Positions 1,808 to 39,985 of a stretch of 64,000 nucleotides of DNA are shown here, piece after piece. The stretch lies in NCBI RefSeq assembly GCF_028641065.1, contig NW_026576125.1, positions 124,001-188,000 of the forward strand, given 5' to 3'. The translations under genes and the position numbers were made by a program. The DNA comes from Leucoraja erinacea. Its lineage: Eukaryota. The notes under the pieces were generated by a model. That model had not been told where the DNA came from and searched no databases. It worked only from the letters and a program-made list of their open reading frames with translations. Every line of letters starts with the position of its first letter. Within the stretch, counting starts at the first letter, position 1.

Positions 1808-1935
1808 TTACTTTATTTCACACTTTCCTGCCAAACAATCATACTGCCGGATAGAACCATCTGAGAATGTCACATTGAGATTACTCTGGTAGATGAACTT
1901 CGGCAGACACTTCGAACAGCCGGGACATTTTCGAC
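1808..1935 (-). CDS. IgW: IgW short-form Cys-rich secretory tail exon
   Basis: Acceptor ttccatttccag|. GRKCPGCSKCLPKFIYQSNLNVTFSDGSIRQYDCLAGKCEIK* has 5 Cys and an NVT sequon and is in phase with CH2. It is absent from the ORF track. Confidence 0.9.
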
Positions 1936-2164
1936 CTGGAAATGGAAGATTAATTGATTTAAATGTTAAGAGATTTTTACCTCCTGTGTTGAGGAAAGAG
2001 GAGATTCACATATTCCCAGTCTGTGTCCTCAGTATTTATCAGCATAAGATTATGCCGACCACGATAAACTGCTTCACTTTATCCAGGATCAGACAATACT
2101 TTAAAGAGTGTGGAGATGAGTTCAAAAATAATCCAGGCACTGACATTTCAATGAAAGGGAAAGG

Positions 2165-3369: not shown

Positions 3370-3669
3370 CCTCTTGATATCTCATGTTGATCTTGTCGCT
3401 GAAGCCGGAAGGTGCGTGGGTCACTTCACAAGTATATTCCTGTTTGTTGGTCCATTCCTCCATATTCAACGGCAGGTAAGCAACTGTTTCAAATCCACCG
3501 TTAGTTCTCGGAGTGGACGGGAGAACGACGCCCGCTTGATTAAGTCCAGCTTTTTTCCAGGAAACTTTAATATTGTCAGGAGAGAATCCAGATATCATGC
3601 AGCCCAGGACAGCAGTTGTTTGATTGTGGAGAGTCTCCGGAGATGGAACAAGGGGGATGAGCTGTGGGG
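3370..3669 (-). CDS. IgW: IgW CH2 exon
   Basis: 300-bp phase 1-1 exon: APQLIPLVPSPETLHNQTTAVLGCMISGFSPDNIKVSW...YTCEVTHAPSGFSDKINMRYQE; donor G|GTGAGT. Confidence 0.95.
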
Positions 3670-4027
3670 CTGTAACATATTTAATATCTGTTATTACTTG
3701 ATTCTTTCAGCCACATTGCAGGATTCCACTCTCCCAGCATCTGGGACAAGTGCCCCAGTACCAGCCCTCCCCACAATGCTGGTGATATGCCGGTGATGTG
3801 TTGATACGGTGGGTCCCACGATCAGATGCTGGTCAGTGCTGTGATTGGGAGGCTGGGTTAGAACACAGGCCTCCCCAGCAGTGTGGGCCACTCTGCAGTG
3901 GTAAGGGTGGAGGTGGGTAAGTGGCGTACAGACCATCCGTGATCTCAGTGTGTGCTGGAGCAGACACAGGAACAGATGAGCCAACTGTTTCTACTGGCAG
4001 GAGGTTTGGGAATCACAACTTTAAGTT

Positions 4028-4596: not shown

Positions 4597-4860
4597 CTGC
4601 AGGAATTTGACAAAGCAGTGGATAGAATGGAGGCAGATCAAGACGAGATGCTTCCTCTGTGAATCCTCCCCCTTCCCCTCACCATTATCTCCTTCCACAT
4701 AAATTCCCAGTGTATTTTTCCTTGTGCAGCAGCAGTCTGGCTGATAGGATGAGAATGAATGAGCAAAATAAGCCATTCGCTTCCTCCTGCATTGTTCGAC
4801 AAAGGCTTCCACTTTAGTTCTATCATCAGCTTTAAATGGACAACAAAATCTCACACTAAC

Positions 4861-5165
4861 CTTGAGCTTCTGGATCTCCGTTTTCACCATGTTGTCCGGC
4901 TTGGATCCTGCCTTGCAGTAGTAGGTTTTCCTGTTCCAATCTGCTACAGAGACTCGCAGCAAGCTGCTCATTGTGTACTTGTTGTTTTGTCCCAACACTG
5001 GTGGGTACTTTGTTATTCCATTGTTGATGACCCCACTGCTGGTGGACCATGTCTGACTGATGATCTCAGGCAGGTAGTCCTTGACCAGACAGAGGATGCT
5101 GATCTCTTGTCCAGATTCCGTGTTGCAGGAAGAGGTGATGTGGACTGAAGGCAAAACCACATCCT
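4861..5165 (-). CDS. IgW: IgW CH1 exon (ends out of phase)
   Basis: Acceptor tttccatttcag|. EDVVLPSVHITSSC...ILCLVKDYLPE...W...YYCKAG...EIQKLK is a C1-set domain. Donor AAG|GTTAGT; 305 bp, phase 1 in and phase 0 out. Confidence 0.9.
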
Positions 5166-5644
5166 CTGAAATGGAAATAAATGAACAGTTGGTTCTATAG
5201 TACATGGATTATTACCAGCGCATGCAACAGGTTCATGCTGATTGCTGAGTGAATGCAGGTGATTCAGGCTGAGAGAAGGCCAGGCACAGCAGACAAATAG
5301 TTCCTTTCCCAATCCCTTTCACACCGTGCATGACCAAGCAGTGAAATGCTGATCTCACACTGGGGAAGCAACATCTGCCAACCAGAGGGACAAACCGGCC
5401 TGTGCTCTGGGTGATGTGTCCCAGGTCAGGAACCACATGGTATGGTGCCAGATGGACCATATCTATAACCACCGGGCCAAATGGTGCTGGATCTGGCCTG
5501 TTGTGGAACTCCTTCAATGCTGGGCCTCGGGGAGTGTTGTACAACTAAAGGATCTTGGAGAACAGCTACACAGATCCCAGGAAGCGTTGTCACAGGTAAA
5601 TAGGTTGGTAAACAAAGCTATTCATGAATCAGGGAATTGATATA

Positions 5645-6197
5645 CAGTAACCCCTCGTTTTAACGGACCACTTTATAACAGACGGACCTGCCGACAGCAC
5701 CCTTGCACGCATGGTCCTTGGAGTCACCAACATACTGCACCTTGGAAGCAGCAGCTGGTGAGAGGAGAGGGTGCCCCATGGTGAGCATGCACCCTGTCAG
5801 TGGCCTGAAGAAAGCACTGCCAGTCAGAAGCTACATTGTGAGCCACAACCACAGCCGTGTCACCGGACCGTGCGGTGGATGAAGAAGGACTCGCTGGTGC
5901 AGAGCAGAGACAATGGCGCCTGGTTTTAAGTTGAAATTACACAAAGTGCTTGAGTAACCCAGCAGACTGAATCAGTCTGAAGAAGATTCCCCACCTCACC
6001 TATTGATGTTCTCCAGAGATGCTCCCTGACCAGTTGAATTACTCCAGCACTTTGTGTCTTTTTGTGTATTAACCAGTATCTGCATTCTTTGTTTCAACTA
6101 CATATACGGGTAATACCTTTCTTGTTTAAAGCTAACATTCGGCAATAATGGATACTATCCCCCCCACACCATGGTCCGTTATAATGAGGGTTTACTG
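5645..6197. mobile_element. Tigger/pogo-like MITE inside an old CR1 fragment (~5530-6780)
   Basis: TIRs cagtaacccctcgttttaacggacc and ggtccgttataatgagggtttactg, preceded by TA. Confidence 0.7.
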
Positions 6198-7135
6198 TTC
6201 AGAAGTTGGATGTTATACTAGAATGTTACAAGAAATCGGTGAGGCTGAATTTGGAATACAATGTTGAGTTTTCATCAAGCTACTCTCGGAAAGATATCAT
6301 TAGGCTAGAAGAGTGCTGAGAAGATTCACAAGTATGTTGCCAGGACTCAAGGGCCTGAGCTGGAGGGAAAAGTAGGGCAGGCTCGGACTTTACTCCTTTA
6401 TACCTCTAGAAGGCAGAAGAGTGATCCTATAAAGGTGTATAAAATCATGAAGGGAATAGATAGGGTGAATGCACAGTCTATTACACAGGATAGGGGAATC
6501 AAGATATAGGTGTAAGATGTGAGGAACAAGATTTAATGGGAATGTGTGGGGAACTTTCACATCCACAGGGTGGTGGATATATGGAACAGGCTGCCAGAGG
6601 AAACAGTTGAGGCAGGTACGATAACAGCATTTAAAAGACACTTGGACAGATACATGGATAGGAAAGAATTAGAGGACATGAGGTAAACATGGGCAAGTGG
6701 GACTAGCATACATGGAACATCAGGCTGCCTTGCACAAGCTGAGCTGAAGGGCCTGTTTCCATGCTGTATGACTCCATGTCTCCGAGTTATTAATGGGCTG
6801 GGAAATGCTTTGAGATGTCCTGGGGTTGTGGAAACCTTCAACAAAATAAAAAAAACATCAAATAAAAGTGGAAATAGTGGTTGTCAGATACTGTACTGAA
6901 AGAGTTTGATGATAGAGCTCTGAAGTGAAAGGGTGATTCTGCTTCTCTCCCCACAGATGCTGCCTGAACTGTCGAGTGTTTCGTGCAGGAGGATCAATGA
7001 TATCAGGCGGCGAGACTTGTAGCTCACTGTGTTTTCCATCCCGGGATCAGCAGGTGGTGAGTGCAGTTTAATTTGGATCCATGTTCCTAATGTGGTCAGG
7101 AGGTGGGTCAGAGACAGGAAAACACATCATACTAG

Positions 7136-7748
7136 CAGCTGGCGTGAGGAGCTGGGTGCTGGGGGGAGGAGCTGGGGGGAGGAGCTGGGTGTTGGGGTGA
7201 GGAGCTGGGTGCTGGGGGGAGGAGCTGGGTGCTGGGGGGAGGAGCTGGGTGTTGTTGGGGGGAGGAGCTGGGTGTTGGGGTGAGGAGCTGGGTGTTGGGG
7301 GGAGGAGCTGGGTGTTGGGGGGAGGATCTGGTGTGGGGGAGGAGCTGGGTGTTGGGGGAGGAGCTGGGTGCTGGGGGGAGGAGCTGGGGGGAGGAGCTGG
7401 GTGCTGGGGGGAGGAGCTGGGTGCTGGGGGGAGGAGCTGGGGTGAGGAGCTGGGTGCTGGGGGGAGGAGCTGGGTGTTGGGGTGAAGAGCTGGGTGCTGG
7501 GGGGAGGAGCTGGGTGTTGGGGTGAGGAGCTGGGTGCTGGGGGGAGGAGCTGGGGGGAGGAGCTGGGTGCTGGGGGGAGGAGCTGGGTGCTGGGGGGGGA
7601 GGAGCTGGGGTGAGGAGCTGGGTGCTGGGGGGAGGAGCTGGGTGTTGGGGTGAAGAGCTGGGTGGAGGAGCTGGGTGCTGGGGGGAGGTGCTGGGGGGAG
7701 TAGCTGGGTGCTGGGGGGAGGAGCTGGGTGTTGGGGGGTGAGGAGCTG
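7136..7748. repeat. G-rich ~20-bp tandem repeat (GGAGGAGCTGGGTGYTGGGG), switch-region-like, in the J-CH1 intron
   Basis: About 32 AGCT counted by eye, plus many TGCT and G4-G8 runs. Confidence 0.9.
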
Positions 7749-8654
7749 CAATAAACTGCCCGTCTGGGTTGCCATCCTGGGGGCATTTAGTGCCAATTGC
7801 GCTGCTGGGTCAGGGGTCAGAAATAGGCTCGACTGGGTAAGGACAATAGATCTCCTCCTCTGAGGGACAACAGGGAAACTGAGAGGTCATCATTACTGTG
7901 GATTTGTGCACAAAATCCAGGTTACTAACAAAAGAAAATCTGACACTTGTCCAATCTGTCCCAGATTATGAACAAAGTTTAAATTCCACAGTTGTTACGG
8001 AATTAAACTGGGGTCTGATTGTAGCCTGATGCCCGTCCATTGGATCACTGTAACTGTGGTGTCTCGGACAACATTTTCCCCTCACCAGCGGTATGCCGAT
8101 TCTGCTGTGTGCAGAGTGGATCCATAGTCCCTCCTTTACAACACGGCTCTATTGTGAACATGCCTCACTGCCTGTGAAGCGCTCGGGAACACCATGAAAG
8201 GTGCTCTGTCAATCACTGAGATTCACTGAGACACCAGCAGCCCTGGTTAATGGAACAAAGCACGTGTTGGACAAACCCAGTCTGTCGGCTGGCGGAGGAG
8301 GGCAGCAAATTAGAGCAGTTCCTCCATCTGTGAACTGGGAAAAAGCAGTTCTTTTGTGCAGCAAAACCCACGTCAAAAACACCAAGCAACTTGATTCAGA
8401 ATCTAAACTATGCACATCAGTGAATTCACAATGAAGAATAAAAGGTATTGACTTACTAAGGATCTCTAAATGTTGAAATTCAATACAAGACGCAAGTAAA
8501 ACCTGGTGCACTAAACCCCACATCTACAGTAGAACCATGTACAACATTCTCTCATTACTTTCAAATCATTCATTATTGTGAACCTTTGTTTTTGAACATG
8601 CATCAATGTGTTTTACAATCTAGAGAATGTTCTGTGTTCTGAAGCATTTACACA

Positions 8655-8965
8655 AGGAGTGTTTGACAGAGCAATGTAGAGGGAGCTTGACTCTGTGTCA
8701 AAGACACTGTCCCTGCACTGGGAGAGAGTGTAGAGGGAACTTCACTCAGTGACTAACCCGTACCCTGGGTGTGTGTGGAGACAGGTTGGATGGAGCCTCA
8801 CTCCTTGTCTAACCTGTGCTGTCCCTTCCCTGGGAGTGTTGGGACAGGAAGATGGAACTTTGTATCTAATCTGTAGCTGACAGCACAGTGACACGGGGAG
8901 ATTTATTCTGCATTTGACTCATGCTCTGTCTGACCTGGATGTGTTTGATGGGATCGCTTTGCGGG
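8655..8965. repeat. Degenerate ~60-bp tandem repeat
   Basis: Recurrent gtagagggarctt...ctaacc.gtgctgtccct...ctgggagtgtt units. Confidence 0.6.
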
Positions 8966-9009
8966 AGCAGGTACTGGAGTCATAGCGTCATAGATTAATA
9001 GTGTGGAAA

Positions 9010-10295
9010 CAGGCAGATTAATCTCCAAAAGACTGGAGGGTGGCTGATACTGACGCGTAATTGAAGAAGGACATTAGGGCCAAGCCAGGGATCTACACCA
9101 GTGAGCCTGACGTCATTGGTGGGAATGTCCTTAGGGATAGGAACTATCCATATTTGGATAGACACGGACTGATTAGGGATAGTCCTAAATTTACAAGATC
9201 TAGATCATTTGGGAGGGTGGGCCAAGGATTAGGGACAGCATGGCTTGTGTTGGGGGGAATTGTGCCTCATGAAGCTGATAAGGTTCAATAAGATCTGGCA
9301 TGGTGGGCTGGTGTGGAAGGTTAGATCACATGAAACCCAATATGAGCTAAATTCGCTTGGAGGAAGTGGACTACTGCAGGGGTCAGTGCTGAGACCACTG
9401 TTGTTGGTTATCTACATTAACAATTTGCCATACAATATAGTGGACATTGATAGTAAGTTTGCAGATGACACCAAAGTCAGAGCATGAGTGGACAGTGAGA
9501 GGGATAAGTTTACAATAAGATCAAGATCAGTTGGGAAAGGGAGCCAAGGAATGCCAAATGGAATTTAACTCTGACAAGTGAGGGAGTGTTGAACTGTGGT
9601 AGATCAAACCAGGGCTGGACTTACACAGTAAATGGTAGCGCCTGAAGAGTGTTGTAGAACAGACAGATGTGGAAATGCAGAGGCATGGTTCGCTGAGAGT
9701 GGCGAGTTAGGTGGACAGGGAGCTGATGTGGCTTTTGTCAGACTGCCTTCAATGGGCAGGGTACTGCGTATAAAAGTTGGGACATGATGATGCAGCTGTA
9801 TAAGTCATTGGTGAGACCACGCTTGGAGTAAGTACTGTGTGTAGTTCTGCTCACCCAGCTACAGGATGTCATTATATTGGAGACTTGGAAAAGATTCACC
9901 AAGATATTGTCTGGACATGTGAGGTTCTGTTTTAGGGAGAGGGAGGATAAGGTGCTTTTTTCCCCTTTGAGGCAAAGGACACTGGGCAGTAACCTTATTG
10001 AGGTGAACAAGATCATGAGGGGCATGGATAAGGTGCACGCTCACAGGCTTTGTCCCAGGATAGAGGTTTCTAAAACAAGAGGGCACAGGCGTAAGGTGAG
10101 TGGGGAGAGATTTAAAAGGGGACTTCAGGGGCATTTTTATTCACATTGGGTAGGCAGTATCTGGAATGAGTTGCCAGAGAAAACTATAAAAGCAGATAGA
10201 ATTACGAAAAATCCGGTATATGGATGAGAAGGGTATGTGGCCAATGGGCCGAGCCCAGAAAGCCAGCTTGGTCGGCATGCACAAGATGGACTGAA
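9010..10295 (+). mobile_element. Degenerate CR1 LINE
   Basis: QGSVL.PLL..IYIN, SKFADDTK and LVRPRLE remnants. Confidence 0.75.
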
Positions 10296-10517
10296 GGCAG
10301 ATGATGGCGAGACTCAGGGAAAGAACAGCCTGTGGGGCAGTTCAACGTGGTGGGAAATGTACTGTTGCTGGGTAGATTCTAACTCTGGAGAAACCCGCCT
10401 GTGTCCGGGAAATCCGTTCCAAATATCACACCGAGTTCAGGTCAATTACAGAATTGGCAAAGACCATACATTAATAAAACACAACTGGGTAAAATGGAAT
10501 TGAGGAATTGGTCTTAC

Positions 10518-10561
10518 CTGAAGTCACTGTCAGCGAGGTTCCTGCACCCCAGTAGTCAAGA
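10518..10561 (-). CDS. IGHJ: JH segment LDYWGAGTSLTVTS
   Basis: WGxG motif and phase-1 donor CAG|GTAAGA. Confidence 0.95.
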
Positions 10562-10600
10562 CACACTGATTCATTTTCCCACTCAGTCAGTACAATAACT
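10562..10600 (-). promoter_or_regulatory. JH 23-RSS
   Basis: Plus strand cacactg, 23-bp spacer, acaataact. Confidence 0.9.
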
Positions 10601-10731
10601 CCACTCGCCCTCCACATCCAATAATCTCAGCAAAGTGTCAACGTGAACTCTGCCCGGACCAGGAGCAGCCGTTTCCTGCATTTCCATCCCAATCTCCGTC
10701 CTTGTTCAACCTCTGGTGTGAATAAAAGAGG

Positions 10732-10778
10732 CATTTTTGCCGTCTGCTGCCACCGGCTCTGGCCGTCTCTCACAAACA
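10732..10778 (-). pseudogene. Possible collapsed DH remnant
   Basis: caccggc-12-tcacaaaca (nonamer nearly identical to that of the intact D) faces a nonamer-like catttttgc with only 29 bp between the nonamers. Confidence 0.4.
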
Positions 10779-10926
10779 CAATCGCCTCCTTTTGGGCTTT
10801 TAACCGGCCAGAAATGGACATTTCTTCCCTGCAGTGCGAGCCAGGCTTCAGGGATTTGACTTTGGCAAGCAGCAATGCTCAATGGATGGAGACAGACTGC
10901 GCTGCGGACGCTCATTTGTCGGGGGC

Positions 10927-10992
10927 AGTTTTTGTTCAGCTCTCCACCGCCGTGGGCCAGTATACACGGTGATTCACCGCCGCTCACAAACT
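10927..10992 (-). other. IGHD: DH segment TATACTGGCC (10955-10964) with 12/12 RSSs
   Basis: Plus strand: agtttttgt-12-cgccgtg-[ggccagtata]-cacggtg-12-tcacaaact. Confidence 0.9.
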
Positions 10993-11147
10993 GCGCTACC
11001 ACATCCAGCCCGAAATCCAACGTTGGCCAGAGTGGACAACGGTTTAATTAAAGCCCCGTCCATGTGTGTCCATGTGTCCCACACAGGAGTGTCCAGTCTC
11101 GGCCATTGCAGCCCTGTAGTGGACAGGAGATAACCCACCGCGACTGT

Positions 11148-11169
11148 CACCGTGACTCGACCCACAGCG
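11148..11169 (-). pseudogene. Possible degenerate DH (GGTCGAGT) with two heptamers and no nonamers
   Basis: caccgtg-[actcgacc]-cacagcg lies midway between V and the intact D. No nonamer is found at 12 or 22/23 bp on either side. Confidence 0.4.
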
Positions 11170-11319
11170 GCTCCTCGCTGTTTGTGTTCCCACATCTCCA
11201 GTGGAACTTGTTCCCTGTGCCAGATGATGCACTCTGGATCTGGTTTATATCCACGGGTCCCGAGGAAAGGCGGCGGCGGCAGCGCCCAGAGACGTGATTT
11301 AAAGCGTTTGGCTGCGGCA

Positions 11320-11357
11320 GGTTTTTGTATTGAGGAAGTCCCATCTCTCACACCTCG
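11320..11357 (-). promoter_or_regulatory. VH recombination signal sequence with defective heptamer
   Basis: Perfect nonamer ACAAAAACC (11328-11320) and 22-bp spacer, but the heptamer position reads CGAGGTG; only the terminal GTG remains. Confidence 0.85.
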
Positions 11358-11648
11358 CACAGTAATAGGTGGCCGTGTCGGCCAGACTCAGGCGGGTCAT
11401 TTGGAGATAGACGTTGCTGCTGTCCTTGGAAACAGTGAATCGGCCGCTGAAGGCAGGCGCGTAATCTTTGCCACCACCATTCCACATCACCGCCACCCAC
11501 TCCAGCCCTTTCCCGGGGACTTGTTTCACCCAGCTCACGGAGTAGGTGCTGAGGCTGAACCCGCTGGTTACACAGGTCAGTTTGAGGGACTCTCCGGACT
11601 TTGCCGCCTCGGTCGGTTTCTGATTCAGCACGACCGCGGATCGAACGC
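11354..11648 (-). CDS. IGHV: IgW (IgX)-type VH exon, unrearranged
   Basis: Acceptor ttttattagcag|. Open frame GVRSAVVLNQKPTEAAKSGESLKLTC...WVKQVPGKGLEWV...RFTVSKD...DTATYYCAR has both Cys and the FR2 Trp. It resembles skate IgX V regions as I recall them. Confidence 0.95.
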
Positions 11649-11778
11649 CTGCTAATAAAAGAGAAACAAAGTTGAATAAACAGTTGAAGAGGCAGAGGGT
11701 CAAAGAGTGTCCGAGAAGCAGCCCGGCCCCGAGTGGGGGTGACGCCCGCCCGCCCGTCCGCCGCGGGGGGACACCCAC

Positions 11779-11824
11779 CTGGCAGACAGGACAGAAGGAG
11801 ACAGAGATAAGCAGCGACCCCCAT
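11779..11824 (-). CDS. IGHV: Ig heavy-chain (IgW/IgX) leader exon
   Basis: ATG at 11824 gives MGVAAYLCLLLSCLP+G, a 46-bp phase-1 signal-peptide exon with donor CAG|GTGGGT and a 130-bp intron. Confidence 0.95.
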
Positions 11825-11913
11825 CACTCTGAGCACTGACACACACTTGGACACTCCAGGAATGGGCGGCTTCAGCTCAAGGCCGGCTTTGTCGGGAGCA
11901 GCAGTCAGCGCTG

Positions 11914-11930
11914 TTTAAATAGGAAAGTGA
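11914..11930 (-). promoter_or_regulatory. VH promoter TATA-like box
   Basis: TATTTAAA at 11921-11914, about 90 bp upstream of the ATG, next to an aggaaagtga ETS/IRF-like site. No octamer seen nearby. Confidence 0.6.
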
Positions 11931-12184
11931 GCTGTGAGTGAGAGACAGAGAGAGAGGTAGCCGCGGTTTCCCCACCCACTGAAACCAGAGGCGCGGCTTC
12001 CTGTCCCTGCCCCCAGCACCCAGTTCAATTCCCCAAAAGGTGTTTGTCTCCACAACAGGTGGAGGGGCAATGATGAGATCCGGATTAAAGATTGATCCCA
12101 CTCTGCTCCATCCACTCATTACAATGATGAACACTTTGTGGAGCAAGAGGTCACTCAGATCCCCAGTGAGGGGCTGAGTTAAAA

Positions 12185-12555
12185 GTCGGTGTACAGATAT
12201 CCCCCTGAGAGAGTGGGACATCTGTCAATGTAGATATCCCCTGCCTTGGGAGAGAGGGTCTAAATTTCACCGGTCAGTGAACAGATATCGTGGTGAGAGA
12301 GAGGGACTGAGAGAGACCAGTTAGTGTACAGATATCGTGGTGAGAGAGAGGGACTGAGAGAGACTGAGTCAGTGCAGATATCGTGGTGAGCGAGTGGGAC
12401 TGAGAGACTGGTCAGTGTACAGATATCCCCCTGAGCGAGTGGGACTGAGAGAGACCGGTCAGTGTACAGATATCGTGGTGAGAGAGAGGGACTGAGAGAG
12501 GCCAGTTAGTGCAGATATCCACATTAATGAGAGGACTGAGAGACACCAGTCAGTT
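12185..12555. repeat. ~42-bp minisatellite upstream of the VH promoter; resumes at ~13915-14630 with (GA)n tracts
   Basis: Repeated gtcagtgtacagatatcgtggtgagagagagggactgagaga. Confidence 0.85.
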
Positions 12556-12769: not shown

Positions 12770-13694
12770 GAAGTCAAGCTACAACAGCCAGTCGTGATGC
12801 TATGAATGAAGTCCATCTACGCCTATATCAGCGACAATCTACAACAATGTATGACCATACCGGCGACATGCTACGACCATACCGGTGACATGCTATGACC
12901 ATACTAACGACATGCTACGATCATACCGGCGACATGCTATGACCATACCGGTGACATGCTATGACCATACCAGCGACATGCTACGACAGCTGGCGACCAT
13001 CGGCAACAGTTGACGTGACTAGCTACACCAGGCTACAACAGTGGCTCCTCCATGAGTCTCCTTTTTCTCCAGGAGACGGCCCACCCAGTGTCTTCGGCTC
13101 CTGAAACAGCTCAGGGGGAAGCCTGGTGAAGTTTCTGAAGGCAGCCTCATCTTCTTGCTGGAGCTCAGTCATCAGGTTGTCATATTGGCCCAACCTGGGT
13201 CTCTACAGGGACAAGGGATTCAACCAAACACACACCTCTTCTTGGACTTCCTCTTACCCATTCTTCTTGCCCTTCTGTCTTGCTGATCTTTAAGCATGAG
13301 GGCTGCTGCAAGCAGCAGGGCTTCTTCATGTGAGAGCAATGTCCTCAGATGTTGGAAACAATACATCCCCTTTGTAACTGGGTGATTCCATTGTTTCGGA
13401 GGCCAAAATGACATGAATTGTCTTCAGTTGTCTCCGACAGTCGTAACTTGTCGTGGACGTAGGTTGACTTCGGTTGTCGCCTGTGTGGTCGTAGATTGTC
13501 GTAGGTGGACGTCCCAAGTCACGATGATTGGGTCGCCGGTTGTCGGTAGCTTGCGTTAGCTTGACTTCGACTCGGTGGTATGTTGTTGGAGTTTGTCGTA
13601 GACATTGTTGTGGGGGGGTCAAGTCGCCGGTTTTTCGGCTGCATTCTACGACTATGACAGTTGCAGGCAGTCGCCTAAGTGGGACATGCCCTTA
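12770..13694. mobile_element. Harbinger-like non-autonomous element with internal 22-bp repeats
   Basis: Right TIR aagtgggacatgccctt; ctacgaccataccggcgacatg repeats with inverted counterparts. Left TIR not seen. Confidence 0.55.
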
Positions 13695-15439: not shown

Positions 15440-15905
15440 AGGAATGTAATTGGAGAGGATTCTTTGGGATAGGATTTACTACCATTTGGAAGCCAATGGG
15501 CTAGTTAGGGACCATCAGCATGGCTTTGTACGCCACAGATCATGTCTTACTAACTTGAATGATTTTTTTGAGGAGGTGACAAAGGTGATCCATGAAGGTA
15601 GGGCAGTGGATGTTGTCCATATGGACCATAGTAAGGCATTTGAGAAAGTTCTCCATGGTTGGTTGTCCAAGAAGGGCAAAATGCACGGCCTTCAAAGTGA
15701 TTTTGTCATCTGGGTCAATACCTGTTTACTGATAGAAGACAGAGGGTTGTGGTGAATGTCGTTATTCAGAGTGGAAGTCTGTGACCAGCTGAGCTCTGCA
15801 GGGATCTGCGGACAGTGAGCAAGGATGTTAAAGTATAGATCTGCGAGGAGGATGCTATGAGGCTGCAGGGTGACTTGGATTGGTTGGGTGAGTGGGCAGA
15901 TGCAC
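15440..15905 (+). mobile_element. CR1 LINE RT fragment
   Basis: QHGFV..RSCLTNL..FFEEVT...AVDVV.MD.SKAF motif. Confidence 0.8.
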
Positions 15906-23245: not shown

Positions 23246-25759
23246 TGAGTGACTACTGCATCTGCCACGCATCTGCCCACTCACTCAACCTGTCCAGGTC
23301 ACCCTGCAACCTCCCAACATCCTCTTCACAGTTCACACTGCCACCCAGCTTTGTGTCATCCGCAAATTTGCCAGTGTTGCTCCTAATTCCCTCTTCCAAA
23401 TCATTAATATATATGGTAAACAGTTGCGGCCCCAACACCGAGCCTTGTGGCACTCCACTCGTCACTGCCTGCCATTCTGAAAAAGGACCTATAATTGCAT
23501 CAGCGTGCTGGGACCAGGAAAGATCTTGTTATAATATGGCAGAAACTCTCCTCTGTACTGATCTGTGCTGCATCTGCTATGGAGTGCTGATGGGAAAGTG
23601 TTCAGGACCCATTACAAATAATCTGCTCCAATGTGATAATTGTGTTCTGAAGAAGCTTCATGTTGTACAAAATCACTTTGTAAAGACAATGATACCAATG
23701 GGGGAAAGGAGGCTTCGGGGCTAAAGTGTTTCAGATTCACAATAAGAAAGTTACTATTCCCACAGGATTTTAAAAATAAAGGTATTTTCAATACCTATAA
23801 TATCTTTCTTTTGTTACCTCAAACTAAAAATACTAAAGGCAGCGCTACAAAATAAAGTGCTGGAGTAAAAATGGGTCAGGCAGCATCTCTGGAGAACATG
23901 GTTGTGATGTTTCAGGTTGGGATTCTTCTTCATTGATTGTGGTGGTGGGGGTGGTGGTGGGGTGTGTGTGGGGGTGGGGTGGGGGGGGGTAGGACAAAAC
24001 CTGGCAAGTGATAGGTGGATAGAGGTGAGGGAGATTATCGATAGGAATTGCAGATACTAGTTTACACCGAAATAGGCCCAAAATGCTGGAGTAACACAAC
24101 GGGTCAGATAGCATCTCTGGAGAAATTTCGGGTCAAGACCATTCTTCAGACTGAGTCAGGGGAAAGGGAAACTAGAGATATGAAAAGGTACAAAATAAAT
24201 GAGAGCCATCATCGATGACTCAGGAAAGGTAGAGCCCACAATGGTCTATTGTTGGCTGTGGATGAAGTGATAATAAAGGGATACGAACCATGAAACTAGC
24301 AAGTTGTCTCGGGTGGTGGAGGGAGGGAGAGATAGGGATTGCAAGGGACCCCGACAGTCCTCTTAGGTGAGGCAGAGGTTCACGCACCTCCTCCAACCTC
24401 CAATGTATCGGCGAGACTAAGCACAGACTGGGCAATCATTTTGCTGACACACCTAGGCTCAGTCCACCTTGGGCTACGAGACCTACCAGTTGCCAAAGAT
24501 GTTAACTCCTCTTCCCATTCCCACATTGACCTTTCCGTCCTGTGCCTCCTCCACTGTCAGACTGAGGCCACATGCAAATTGCAGAACTAGCACCTCATAT
24601 TATGCTTGGGCAGCTTACAACCCAGCGGTATGAATATTGATTTCTCCAACTTCAAGTAACCCTTGCAATCCCTCTCTCGCTTCTCTCCTCAGACTGAAGA
24701 AGGGTCCCAAGCTGACACTTCCCCTACCCATTTTCTCCAGAGATGCTGCCTGACCTGTTGAGCTACTCCAGCATTTTGTGTCGATCTTTGGTACAAACCA
24801 GCATCTGCAGATCATTTTTATTATAATCTTTAATACAATATCATGACTGCTAATGGCAGACAAATTGAACCTGCAGAAATTAAATAAACCCATTGAACAA
24901 ATCAACACCTCACAATACCATCCATGGGCCACAGACTGCCACATGTTTATCTGGGCTTTAAGAGGAGGGAGATCCACTTCATTAAATTTCATTACATTAT
25001 CATTTGCATTAACGTGGATGAAAACTTCATGAGGTATCAAAGACAGCCATTGATTTACTTGAATCGCAGCAACCATTTGTTATTAATAACTGCCAGATGT
25101 CTGAAACTCTGATAACATTTCGACCCAGTCCTTCTCCTTACACTTCCTCATAGGTTGCACAGGCATGTTTAATTTGAGCAGGGGGCCCTCCCAGCAGAGC
25201 TGTTACTACAAAGAATAAGCATACTGCTTTACATATGAAAAAAATAATTCTGATGCTGTGTTTTGCACTAACAGGTTCATGTTTACCCCACGAAATGGGG
25301 CTGAAAGAATTAAAACCAATGGGCAATGACGATCCTCTCCGCATTTCAGTAAATTTGCCACGTTTAGAAATGGGCTCAAAGTGCTGGTGAATTTCATTGA
25401 TCATGATTACACTGATTAATGGGAACGAGCTGTCCAGATGTACGTACACCTGCATTTTAGGTTCTGATGGAGCTGAGACACTCACTCCCACCAGCAACTT
25501 ATTCTGTGTTTACTCGAGCTGATCATAGAGATCCACCCTGATGACTGTAGTTAAAGTGATCGGGTAGATGGGAATTGGCAGCATCAAAGCAATAAACTAA
25601 GGACAAACTAAAAAGTTGTGACAAGCTGCATTTACAGCATTACAAAATGCCGTGGGCAGAATCCCTGCACAATGTGTTTCAGCTGATGTTTGCTGATGAG
25701 AACCAAGGCTGCTCAGTGAATCAGGTTTAAGACTGAAGCAGCAGCCAGGGCCACAATCA

Positions 25760-38076: not shown

Positions 38077-38600
38077 CTAGACTAAGTGGAACCCGTTGGG
38101 TCCCAGTCACACGGGAGGCCTCGTCCCCCAATGCAATACTCCACCACTCACCTGTTCCCCCAACGCAACGGCGGGAGCGTTCTGTAGCTGGGGCACAGGG
38201 CCAACCTCAGGCGGGTATCGCAGCCAGGGAGGGTGACGGCTTCAGGCGGGGCCTGTCGGGGGGGGGGGGGGGGTGTGTGGGGGGGAGAGGAGGAGGTGGG
38301 AGGGGGAGGGGTTTGGGAGGGAGAGGGGTTTGGGAGGGAGAGGGTGGTTGTAGGATGTGGGTGGGGGGGTGGGGGTAGGGGGGTTGTGGGGGTGGGAGGA
38401 TGGTGGGGGGTAAGTGGGGGCAGGGGGGATGTGGGGCAGGGGGATTGTGGGTATAGGAGGAGGGGTGTGTGGTCGGGGGAGTGTGGGGTAGTGTGGGGGA
38501 GGGGGTGTGGGTGAGGGCAGGGAGGGGGGGGTGTAGGGGACGGGGATGCAGGGGAGGGGAGTTGTAGGGGAGTGGGGGGTGGAGGGGAGGGAGGGTTGTG
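38077..38600 (-). mobile_element. Non-autonomous Helitron-like 3' end with G-rich interior
   Basis: Minus strand gggaccc-aac-gggttcc hairpin followed 7 nt later by CTAG|t. Confidence 0.6.
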
Positions 38601-39985
38601 GGGTGAATTTATTATGAGGAATAAGGAAATGGTAGATGAGTTGAATAGGTACTTTGGATCTGTCTTCACTAAGGAGGACACAAACAATCTTCCTGATATA
38701 GTAGCAGCCAGAGGATCTGGGGTGACGGAGGTACTGAAGGAAATCCACATTGGACAGGAAATGGTGTTGGGTGGACTGATGGGACTGAAGGCTGATAAAT
38801 CCCCAAATGGGCAAGGGAGAGCCAGTGGGGAGGATCTGCATCTAAAAGTAGAGCAGACAAAATGTAACCAAGGCAGGAACGGGACCCAGACATGTAGTGT
38901 ACCTGGACTTTCAGAAAGCATTTGATAAGGTCCCACATAGGACAGAATTAGGGCACATGGTATCGGGGGTAGAGTGCTGACATGGATAGAAAATTGGTTG
39001 GCAGATAGGAAACAAAGAATAGGGATTAACGGGTCCCTTTCAGAATGGCAGGCAGTGACTAGTGGGGCACCACAAGGCTCGGTGCTGGGACTGCAGCAAT
39101 TTACAAAATACATTAATGATTTAGATGAAGGGATTCAAAGTAACATGAGCAAATTTGCAGAAGTCACAAAGCTGGGTGACAGTATGAACTGTGAGGAGGA
39201 TGCTATGAGAATGCAGGGTGACTTGGACAGGTTGGGTGAGTGGGCAGATGCATGGCACATGCAGTTGAATGTGGATAAATGTGTGGTTATCCACTTTGGT
39301 TGCAAAAACAGGGAGGCAGATTATTATTGACTAAATGGTGTCAAGTTGGGAAAAGAGGAAGTACAACGGGATCGGGGGGTCCTTGTTCATCAATCAATGA
39401 AAGTAAGCATGCAAGTACAGCAGGCAGTGAAGAAAGCGAATGGCATGTTGGCCTTCACAACAAGAGGATTTGAGTTTAGGAACAAATAGATCCTTCTGCA
39501 GTTGTACAGATCCCGAGTGAGACCACATCTGGAGTATTGTGTGCAGTTTTGATCCCCTAATTTGAGGAAGGACATGCTGGCTATTGAGGGAGTGCAGCGT
39601 AGGTTTACAAGTTTAATTCCCGGGATGGCGGGACTGTCATATGCTGAGAGAATGGAACGGCTGGGCTTGTATACGCTGGAGTTAAGAAGGATGAGAGGAT
39701 ATTCTTGAAACATATAAGATTATTAAGGGTTTGGACATGCTAGAGGCAGGAAACATGTTCCCGATGTTGGGGGGAGTCCAAAATCAGAGGCCACAGTTTA
39801 AGAATAAGGGGTAATCATTTAGAACGGAGACGAGGAAACACTTCTTCACACAGAGTTGTGAGTCTGTGGAATTCTCTGCCTTAGAGGGCAGTGGAGGTCG
39901 GTTCTCTGGATACTTTCAAGAGAGAGCTAGATAGGGCTCTTAAAGATAGCGGAGCCAGGGGATATGGGGAGAAGACAGGAACGGG
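38600..39985 (+). mobile_element. CR1 LINE, interrupted; its 3' end resumes at 43310-43390
   Basis: WIENWLADRKQR, PQGSVLG; the 3' UTR is split at ggaacggg / tcagccatgatc. Confidence 0.85.

Follow-up and report, generated by a model that had tools for sequence, protein, structure and literature searches.

A switch-region-like minisatellite, rich in AGCT and G-runs, in the JH-CH1 intron of a skate IgX/IgW cluster

Switch regions and inter-cluster switching

Sharks are said to exchange constant regions between immunoglobulin (Ig) clusters within the J-C intron, a finding attributed to Zhu et al. 2012. In the nurse shark, where IgW and IgM are encoded by autonomous clusters as they are in the skate, switching between clusters is reported to proceed without S regions; the J-C intron is the site of exchange and no S regions are recognisable (Zhu et al. 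2012 and Zhang et al. 2013, via PMC4279169; PMC4588147). Reviews describe shark Ig loci as devoid of S regions, consider what directs their inter-cluster switching to be unknown (PMC4279169, PMC4588147, PMC8201067) and place the first switch regions in amphibians. A full-text literature search retrieved no description of S-like repeats in shark clusters.

S regions are 1–10 kb long, and the longer they are the higher the switching frequency (PMC2442634), while the density of G acts on the non-template strand (PMC4245955). The S-mu region of Xenopus neither forms an R-loop nor is rich in G; nevertheless, it can substitute for mouse S-gamma-1 with about one quarter of the activity, and it does so via its AGCT-rich part (PMC2442634). 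Synthetic switch regions made of nine 80-bp segments, each with four AGCT, also allow a mouse B-cell line to switch; these constructs have their G on the non-template strand, are preceded by an R-loop initiation zone and lie close to a promoter (Zhang et al. 2014, PMC4245955).

An intronic tandem array in a skate IgX/IgW cluster

The window (the whole 64-kb stretch of skate DNA that was analysed) contains an Ig gene on the minus strand with a G-rich tandem array in its JH-CH1 intron (Table 1). A comparison using as query the unspliced open frame, restricted by region, showed that CH1 shares 97% identity with the little-skate Ig H cDNA AAA49546.1 and 89% with a protein of Amblyraja radiata, with lower values for Raja eglanteria (80%), Hemitrygon (68%) and Pristis (66%). 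The related proteins, of 378–381 aa, have the V-CH1-CH2 structure followed by a Cys-rich tail that characterises the short form of IgX/IgW, IgX being now placed within IgW (PMC5192425); the Hemitrygon model (400 aa) is cut short within CH2. For the tail exon, the left boundary at 1811 is where the tblastn match stops (..GKCEIK), and the right boundary is approximate.

Table 1 Positions in the window of the Ig exons, the tandem array and the adjacent high-copy repeats.
Feature	Position	Strand	Remarks
Leader exon	11777-11824	-	
VH exon	11353-11648	-	
JH heptamer CAGTGTG	10562-10568	-	precedes JH
JH segment, YWGAGTSLTVTS (..DYWGAGTSLTVTS)	10518-10561	-	donor gt at 10517
JH-CH1 intron	5166-10517	-	5,352 nt; contains transposon pieces
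Tandem array	7137-7748	G-rich on +	612 nt, 32 units; Tandem Repeats Finder and motif counts
High-copy element	6919-7009		near the array
High-copy dispersed repeat (transposon)	6282-6827		at 300 nt from the array; internal positive control for contig depth
CH1 exon, IgX/IgW	4861-5165	-	97% identity to little-skate cDNA
CH2 exon	3370-3669	-	
Cys-rich secretory tail exon, short IgX form	~1811-1940	-	tblastn

Two details of the gene suggest that the cluster may be defective. The VH recombination signal (region 11320–11361) has a perfect nonamer, ACAAAAACC, at 11328–11320 on the minus strand, and no CAC-type heptamer at a distance of 12 or 23 nt ahead of this nonamer; the sequence at the V end is TGTGCGAGG-TGTGAGAG. 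This signal looks defective, and the V segment may be unable to rearrange. Likewise, the CH1 donor AAG/GTTAGT (4855–4870, minus strand) is in phase 0, whereas the CH2 acceptor cag/CC CCA (3660–3672) requires CH1 to supply one base; at this junction, related cDNAs have ..K-x-Q-A-PQLIP. The mismatch could correspond to the loss of 1 nt, either in a pseudogene or as an assembly slip, or to the use of an in-frame acceptor, cacag/CTC, located 8 nt downstream.

The array starts 2,769 nt past JH and ends 1,971 nt ahead of CH1, and once VDJ is joined it stands at ~3.3 kb from the V promoter. It is intronic, because all five of the skate, ray and sawfish proteins compared pass from J straight into CH1 (TVTS and then E or V). 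These same five junctions led us to reject the array as a coding exon, which would encode a Pro/Ser-rich hinge-like segment. Two open frames on the minus strand, 7068–7796 and 7127–7786 (242 and 219 aa), are indeed rich in Pro and Ser. However, open frames through the array follow from its composition, as the strand is 63% C and stop codons are rare in it, and the 20-nt period is not divisible by 3. A coding role is refuted for the known transcripts, and we consider its probability negligible.

The array was delimited by Tandem Repeats Finder at 7138–7748, with a period of 20 nt, 31.9 copies, 78% matches and a score of 661. Splitting it at every AGCT yields the 32 units, which are of two types, the 20-nt GGAGGAGCTGGGTGYTGGGG and the 13-nt GGAGGAGCTGGGG, with length variants of 13, 20 and 22–23 nt. 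The commonest ones (five exact copies each) are GGAGGAGCTGGGTGCTGGGG, a TGTT variant, a T-start variant and the 13-nt unit, and the distance from one AGCT to the next is 20 nt in 18 cases and 13 nt in 7. Besides 32 AGCT and 15 TGCT, adding up to 47 WGCW, the array has 30 GAGCT and 31 TGGGG pentamers. Its plus strand is 63% G and only 8% C (G+C 71%), and exhibits 56 runs of at least three G and nine G4-type motifs. Since the Ig gene lies on the minus strand, G predominates on its template strand.

With 52 AGCT per kb against 3.7 in the rest of the window, and 77 WGCW per kb against 19.5, the array is enriched ~14-fold and ~4-fold, respectively. No other 600-nt interval within the 64 kb contains more than 8 AGCT, and a search of both strands of the window found no further 20-mer with up to four mismatches to the array unit. 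Outside the array, the JH-CH1 intron (4.7 kb) has background densities (4.0 AGCT and 20 WGCW per kb), and all the excess of the intron stems from the array. This AGCT excess is not independent of the repeat, because each of the 32 copies contributes its own AGCT. The preliminary description of this DNA had proposed an array of ~610 bp with AGCT and TGCT, 2.8 kb from JH and 2 kb from CH1 in a skate IgW cluster, without any comparable array in the window and with G on the template strand, and had set it against the view that sharks switch without recognised S regions; our counts, distances, CH1 identity and strand assignment, as well as the reviews (PMC4279169, PMC4588147, PMC8201067), agree with it on all these points.

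The array has grown in place. It contains exact segmental duplications of 71–74 nt at offsets of 166–168 nt, which indicate recent unequal exchange within it. Vertebrate hypervariable minisatellites of the Jeffreys type have G-rich units of 10–60 nt, interspersed unit variants and higher-order duplications, and are locus-specific. The same traits are found here (a unit within this size range, repeated head-to-tail, with variants and higher-order duplications), and the array differs from these minisatellites only by its position in an Ig J-C intron and the presence of one AGCT per unit. It is a real minisatellite of S-region-like sequence, for which switching is a candidate function.

The reading that we prefer, with a probability of roughly 0.55, is that of a G-rich, locus-specific minisatellite, expanded where it stands, in the J-C intron of this IgX/IgW cluster, by unequal exchange and replication slippage, without selection for a switch function. 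Having an AGCT every 13–20 nt and dense G-runs in a transcribed intron, it would be a better-than-average AID substrate and break site, provided that AID gains access to it in activated B cells; such a preference would be incidental and would operate through AGCT density and not through sense-strand R-loops. The ordinary minisatellite dynamics just described (unit variants, internal duplications) and the confinement of the AGCT and WGCW excess to the repeat are consistent with this neutral reading, and so is the frequency of tandem arrays in the window, where Tandem Repeats Finder detected at least seven of at least 100 nt, two of them G-rich (7137–7748 and 38262–38603). G-rich repeats are common in this DNA, since arrays of the GGGAGGGGG and GTGGGG types, both devoid of AGCT, also occur at 38262–38603 and 23939–23989 (51 nt).

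A different kind of function, in transcription or RNA processing, would require the array to act through G-quadruplexes on the template or as a C-rich pre-mRNA tract bound by poly(C)-binding proteins, slowing the polymerase or tuning the splicing of short and long IgW. The nine G4-type motifs on the template strand and the C content of the sense RNA (63%) would suit such an element. However, the array is 2–2.8 kb away from either splice site and whether the short or the long form is produced is decided downstream of CH2. Moreover, both strands of the array fold weakly (-10.8 and -8.2 kcal/mol per 300 nt), with no notable hairpin or other Watson-Crick structure, and the intron had no match in an Rfam search. 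We consider this processing role quite improbable. The weak folding of both strands also led us to reject a stem-loop reading of the array, of the kind proposed for Xenopus S regions. An AATAAA motif occurs on the plus strand directly after the last array unit (7750–7755), where it would serve as the poly(A) signal of an antisense transcript leaving the array in the direction of G-rich RNA.

Copy number and presence in related organisms

The proximity of the two high-copy elements (Table 1) raises the question of whether the array is a transposon tail, an internal repeat of a transposon or a member of a dispersed satellite. We examined the depth of Logan contigs from three DNA runs, X1, X5 and X8, corresponding to organisms A, B and C, respectively, over positions 6100–8800 at 80% likeness. 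The two elements had summed contig depths of ~10^4–10^6 in the three organisms, with many internal-deletion variants; for the transposon used as control, values ranged from 8 x 10^4 to 1.9 x 10^6 across the runs. By contrast, the unique flanks had summed depths of ~40–100 (X1), ~100–390 (X5) and ~250–900 (X8), and the array bins of 0–24 (X1), 0–157 (X5) and 31–315 with a single bin at 1,424 (X8), low values that prove nothing by themselves, as short-read contigs break in tandem repeats and the filter drops some records. Thus, the array does not exceed ~5 times the single-copy flanks in any of the three runs, compared with 10^3–10^4 times for the neighbouring transposon. Nevertheless, the array unit does not belong to a high-copy family, because an abundant family would have surfaced as the transposon did.

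On this contig depth, we rejected the identity of the array as a transposon tail or a member of a dispersed family. The spacer between the second element and the array (7010–7100) has approximately single-copy depth and the array is at or below this level (one bin at 4–5 times), against 10^5–10^6 for the element, and neither the unit nor the array flanks have another copy in the window. These values are those of a low-copy, locus-specific minisatellite and differ from those of a dispersed repeat, which would be found in many copies contiguous with the element. A common dispersed minisatellite, the finding that according to the preliminary description would help to refute a switch-related array, is not what contig depth reveals. 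An origin from a mobile element is largely refuted and, in our opinion, very improbable. Low copy number also argues, to some extent, against a neutral origin and for a recombination target, the array not being a transposon by-product; however, it separates these two readings poorly, because neutral minisatellites are normally found at one locus too.

The array is present in the related organisms. At its left edge, contigs from A, B and C extend 22–33 nt beyond position 7143; the right edge (7746–7747) is crossed by contigs from A and C, and all the array bins are covered in run X8. No contig from X1, X5 or X8 spans the whole array. The flanks diverge from the window by ~1–2% in B and 2–3% in C. 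The presence of the array in A–C is not evidence of selection, because neutral DNA is also retained at 1–3% divergence. In addition, a second version of the flank 8025–8589, ~92% identical, was found in X1 and X8, and probably belongs to a paralogue of this IgX cluster or to a divergent haplotype.

We also placed the raw reads of an oligo-dT RNA run, X24, on positions 6100–8800. In this single run, all reads fell on the transposon parts, the two high-copy elements being transcribed from both strands, and neither the array nor the unique parts of the intron received any; as the tissue is unspecified, this result is uninformative on transcription of the array.

Probable neutral growth and possible use in switching

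The likeness of the array to known S regions makes it possible, although on balance we find it doubtful, that it is a recombination target in actual use, that is, a proto-switch region or a convergent one. Transcription of the rearranged cluster would expose the array to AID. At the palindromic AGCT, closely spaced deaminations of the two strands would lead to double-strand breaks, and joining these with breaks in a second cluster's J-C intron would swap the constant region. Targeting might occur via AGCT density, as in Xenopus, via polymerase stalling at G4s of the template or via R-loops formed by antisense transcripts. In support of such a use, and against a neutral origin, the array is in the J-C intron, in which inter-cluster switching of sharks reportedly happens. 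It occupies the same place as S regions, past J and before the constant exons, and consists, as they do, of short tandem repeats dense in AGCT and WGCW, with the enrichments and the number of G-runs given above. The presence of both array edges in related organisms (left in A, B and C, right in A and C) and of a second version of its flank would also be compatible with a used target; however, the divergence of 1–3% among these organisms is too small to reveal selection.

The resemblance is most detailed with mammalian S-mu and S-gamma, which also have tandem GAGCT, TGGGG and GGGGT-type pentamers, dense AGCT and G-clusters in the intron that precedes the first constant exon. The array even has an 11-mer, GGAGCTGGGGT, in common with the mouse S-gamma-3 consensus (PMC2442634). 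Together with the 30 GAGCT and 31 TGGGG, this likeness exceeds what base composition would account for and is a point against the neutral reading. However, the array measures 0.6 kb versus 1–10 kb in mammals, has G on the template instead of the non-template strand, has no known I-promoter and belongs to a stand-alone cluster and not to a translocon with multiple constant genes. Furthermore, in contrast with S-mu and S-gamma, the skate array is a putative target, known from its sequence.

Two of these differences, length and polarity, concern defining features of mammalian S regions. The non-template strand of the array is C-rich, contrary to that of S regions, and for this reason its sense transcripts cannot form R-loops or G4 RNA. 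This argues against a switch region and for a neutral minisatellite, as it is G on the non-template strand that matters (PMC4245955). In this respect, Xenopus S-mu shows that an AGCT-dense target is workable without R-loops (PMC2442634), a mode that would suit the orientation of the array; however, Xenopus S-mu extends over several kb and is AT-rich, whereas the array is short and 71% G+C. The synthetic switch regions of Zhang et al. 2014 are closer in size (720 versus 612 bp) and AGCT density (50 versus 52 per kb), and they are G-rich as well (PMC4245955). That the array is close to working switch regions in size and AGCT density weighs against the neutral reading, although its polarity is opposite to theirs and the V promoter is ~3.3 kb away.

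Several other observations speak against a used switch target or for the neutral minisatellite that we prefer. The length of the array, 0.61 kb, falls short of the 1–10 kb of S regions (PMC2442634). Neither a sterile promoter nor an octamer was seen that would serve a switch target; the octamer ATGCAAAT is absent from positions 5100–12000, and the distance to the V promoter points in the same direction. No read of the RNA run fell on the array, although this has little force because the tissue is unspecified. The cluster in which it resides may itself be defective, with its non-canonical VH heptamer and its CH1 donor out of phase with CH2. Finally, nurse-shark clusters are reported to switch without S regions (PMC4279169, PMC4588147), and reviews describe sharks in general as switching without such arrays.

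A broader claim would be that skate IgW clusters, and perhaps IgM ones, hold short J-C arrays of AGCT and G-runs that are true targets of inter-cluster switching, via AGCT density or antisense R-loops. We regard this as unlikely, and one array in one cluster, possibly passed to a paralogue, does not yet show that switch arrays are recurrent. If the claim were true, dedicated switch sequences would predate tetrapods or would have arisen convergently in batoids, contradicting the textbook view that the Ig loci of cartilaginous fish have no S regions. A skate IgW gene whose J-C intron contains a repeat composed like an S region offers a concrete and inexpensive test of whether targeted switch sequences are older than tetrapods. 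If, on the contrary, the array is neutral, it would be a natural control showing that S-like sequence can arise from ordinary minisatellite growth, which would then be a plausible raw material for the origin of S regions.

Other repeats occur in and around this gene. Two tandem arrays, 12268–12554 (47/138-nt unit, 6 copies) and 12853–12987 (22-nt unit, 6 copies), are found 0.45–1.2 kb upstream of the leader. LINE fragments, with open frames resembling reverse transcriptases, occur on the plus strand at 2288–2879, 9245–10227 and 15450–15755; two of them are inside the Ig gene, antisense to it, and one of these two is within the J-C intron.
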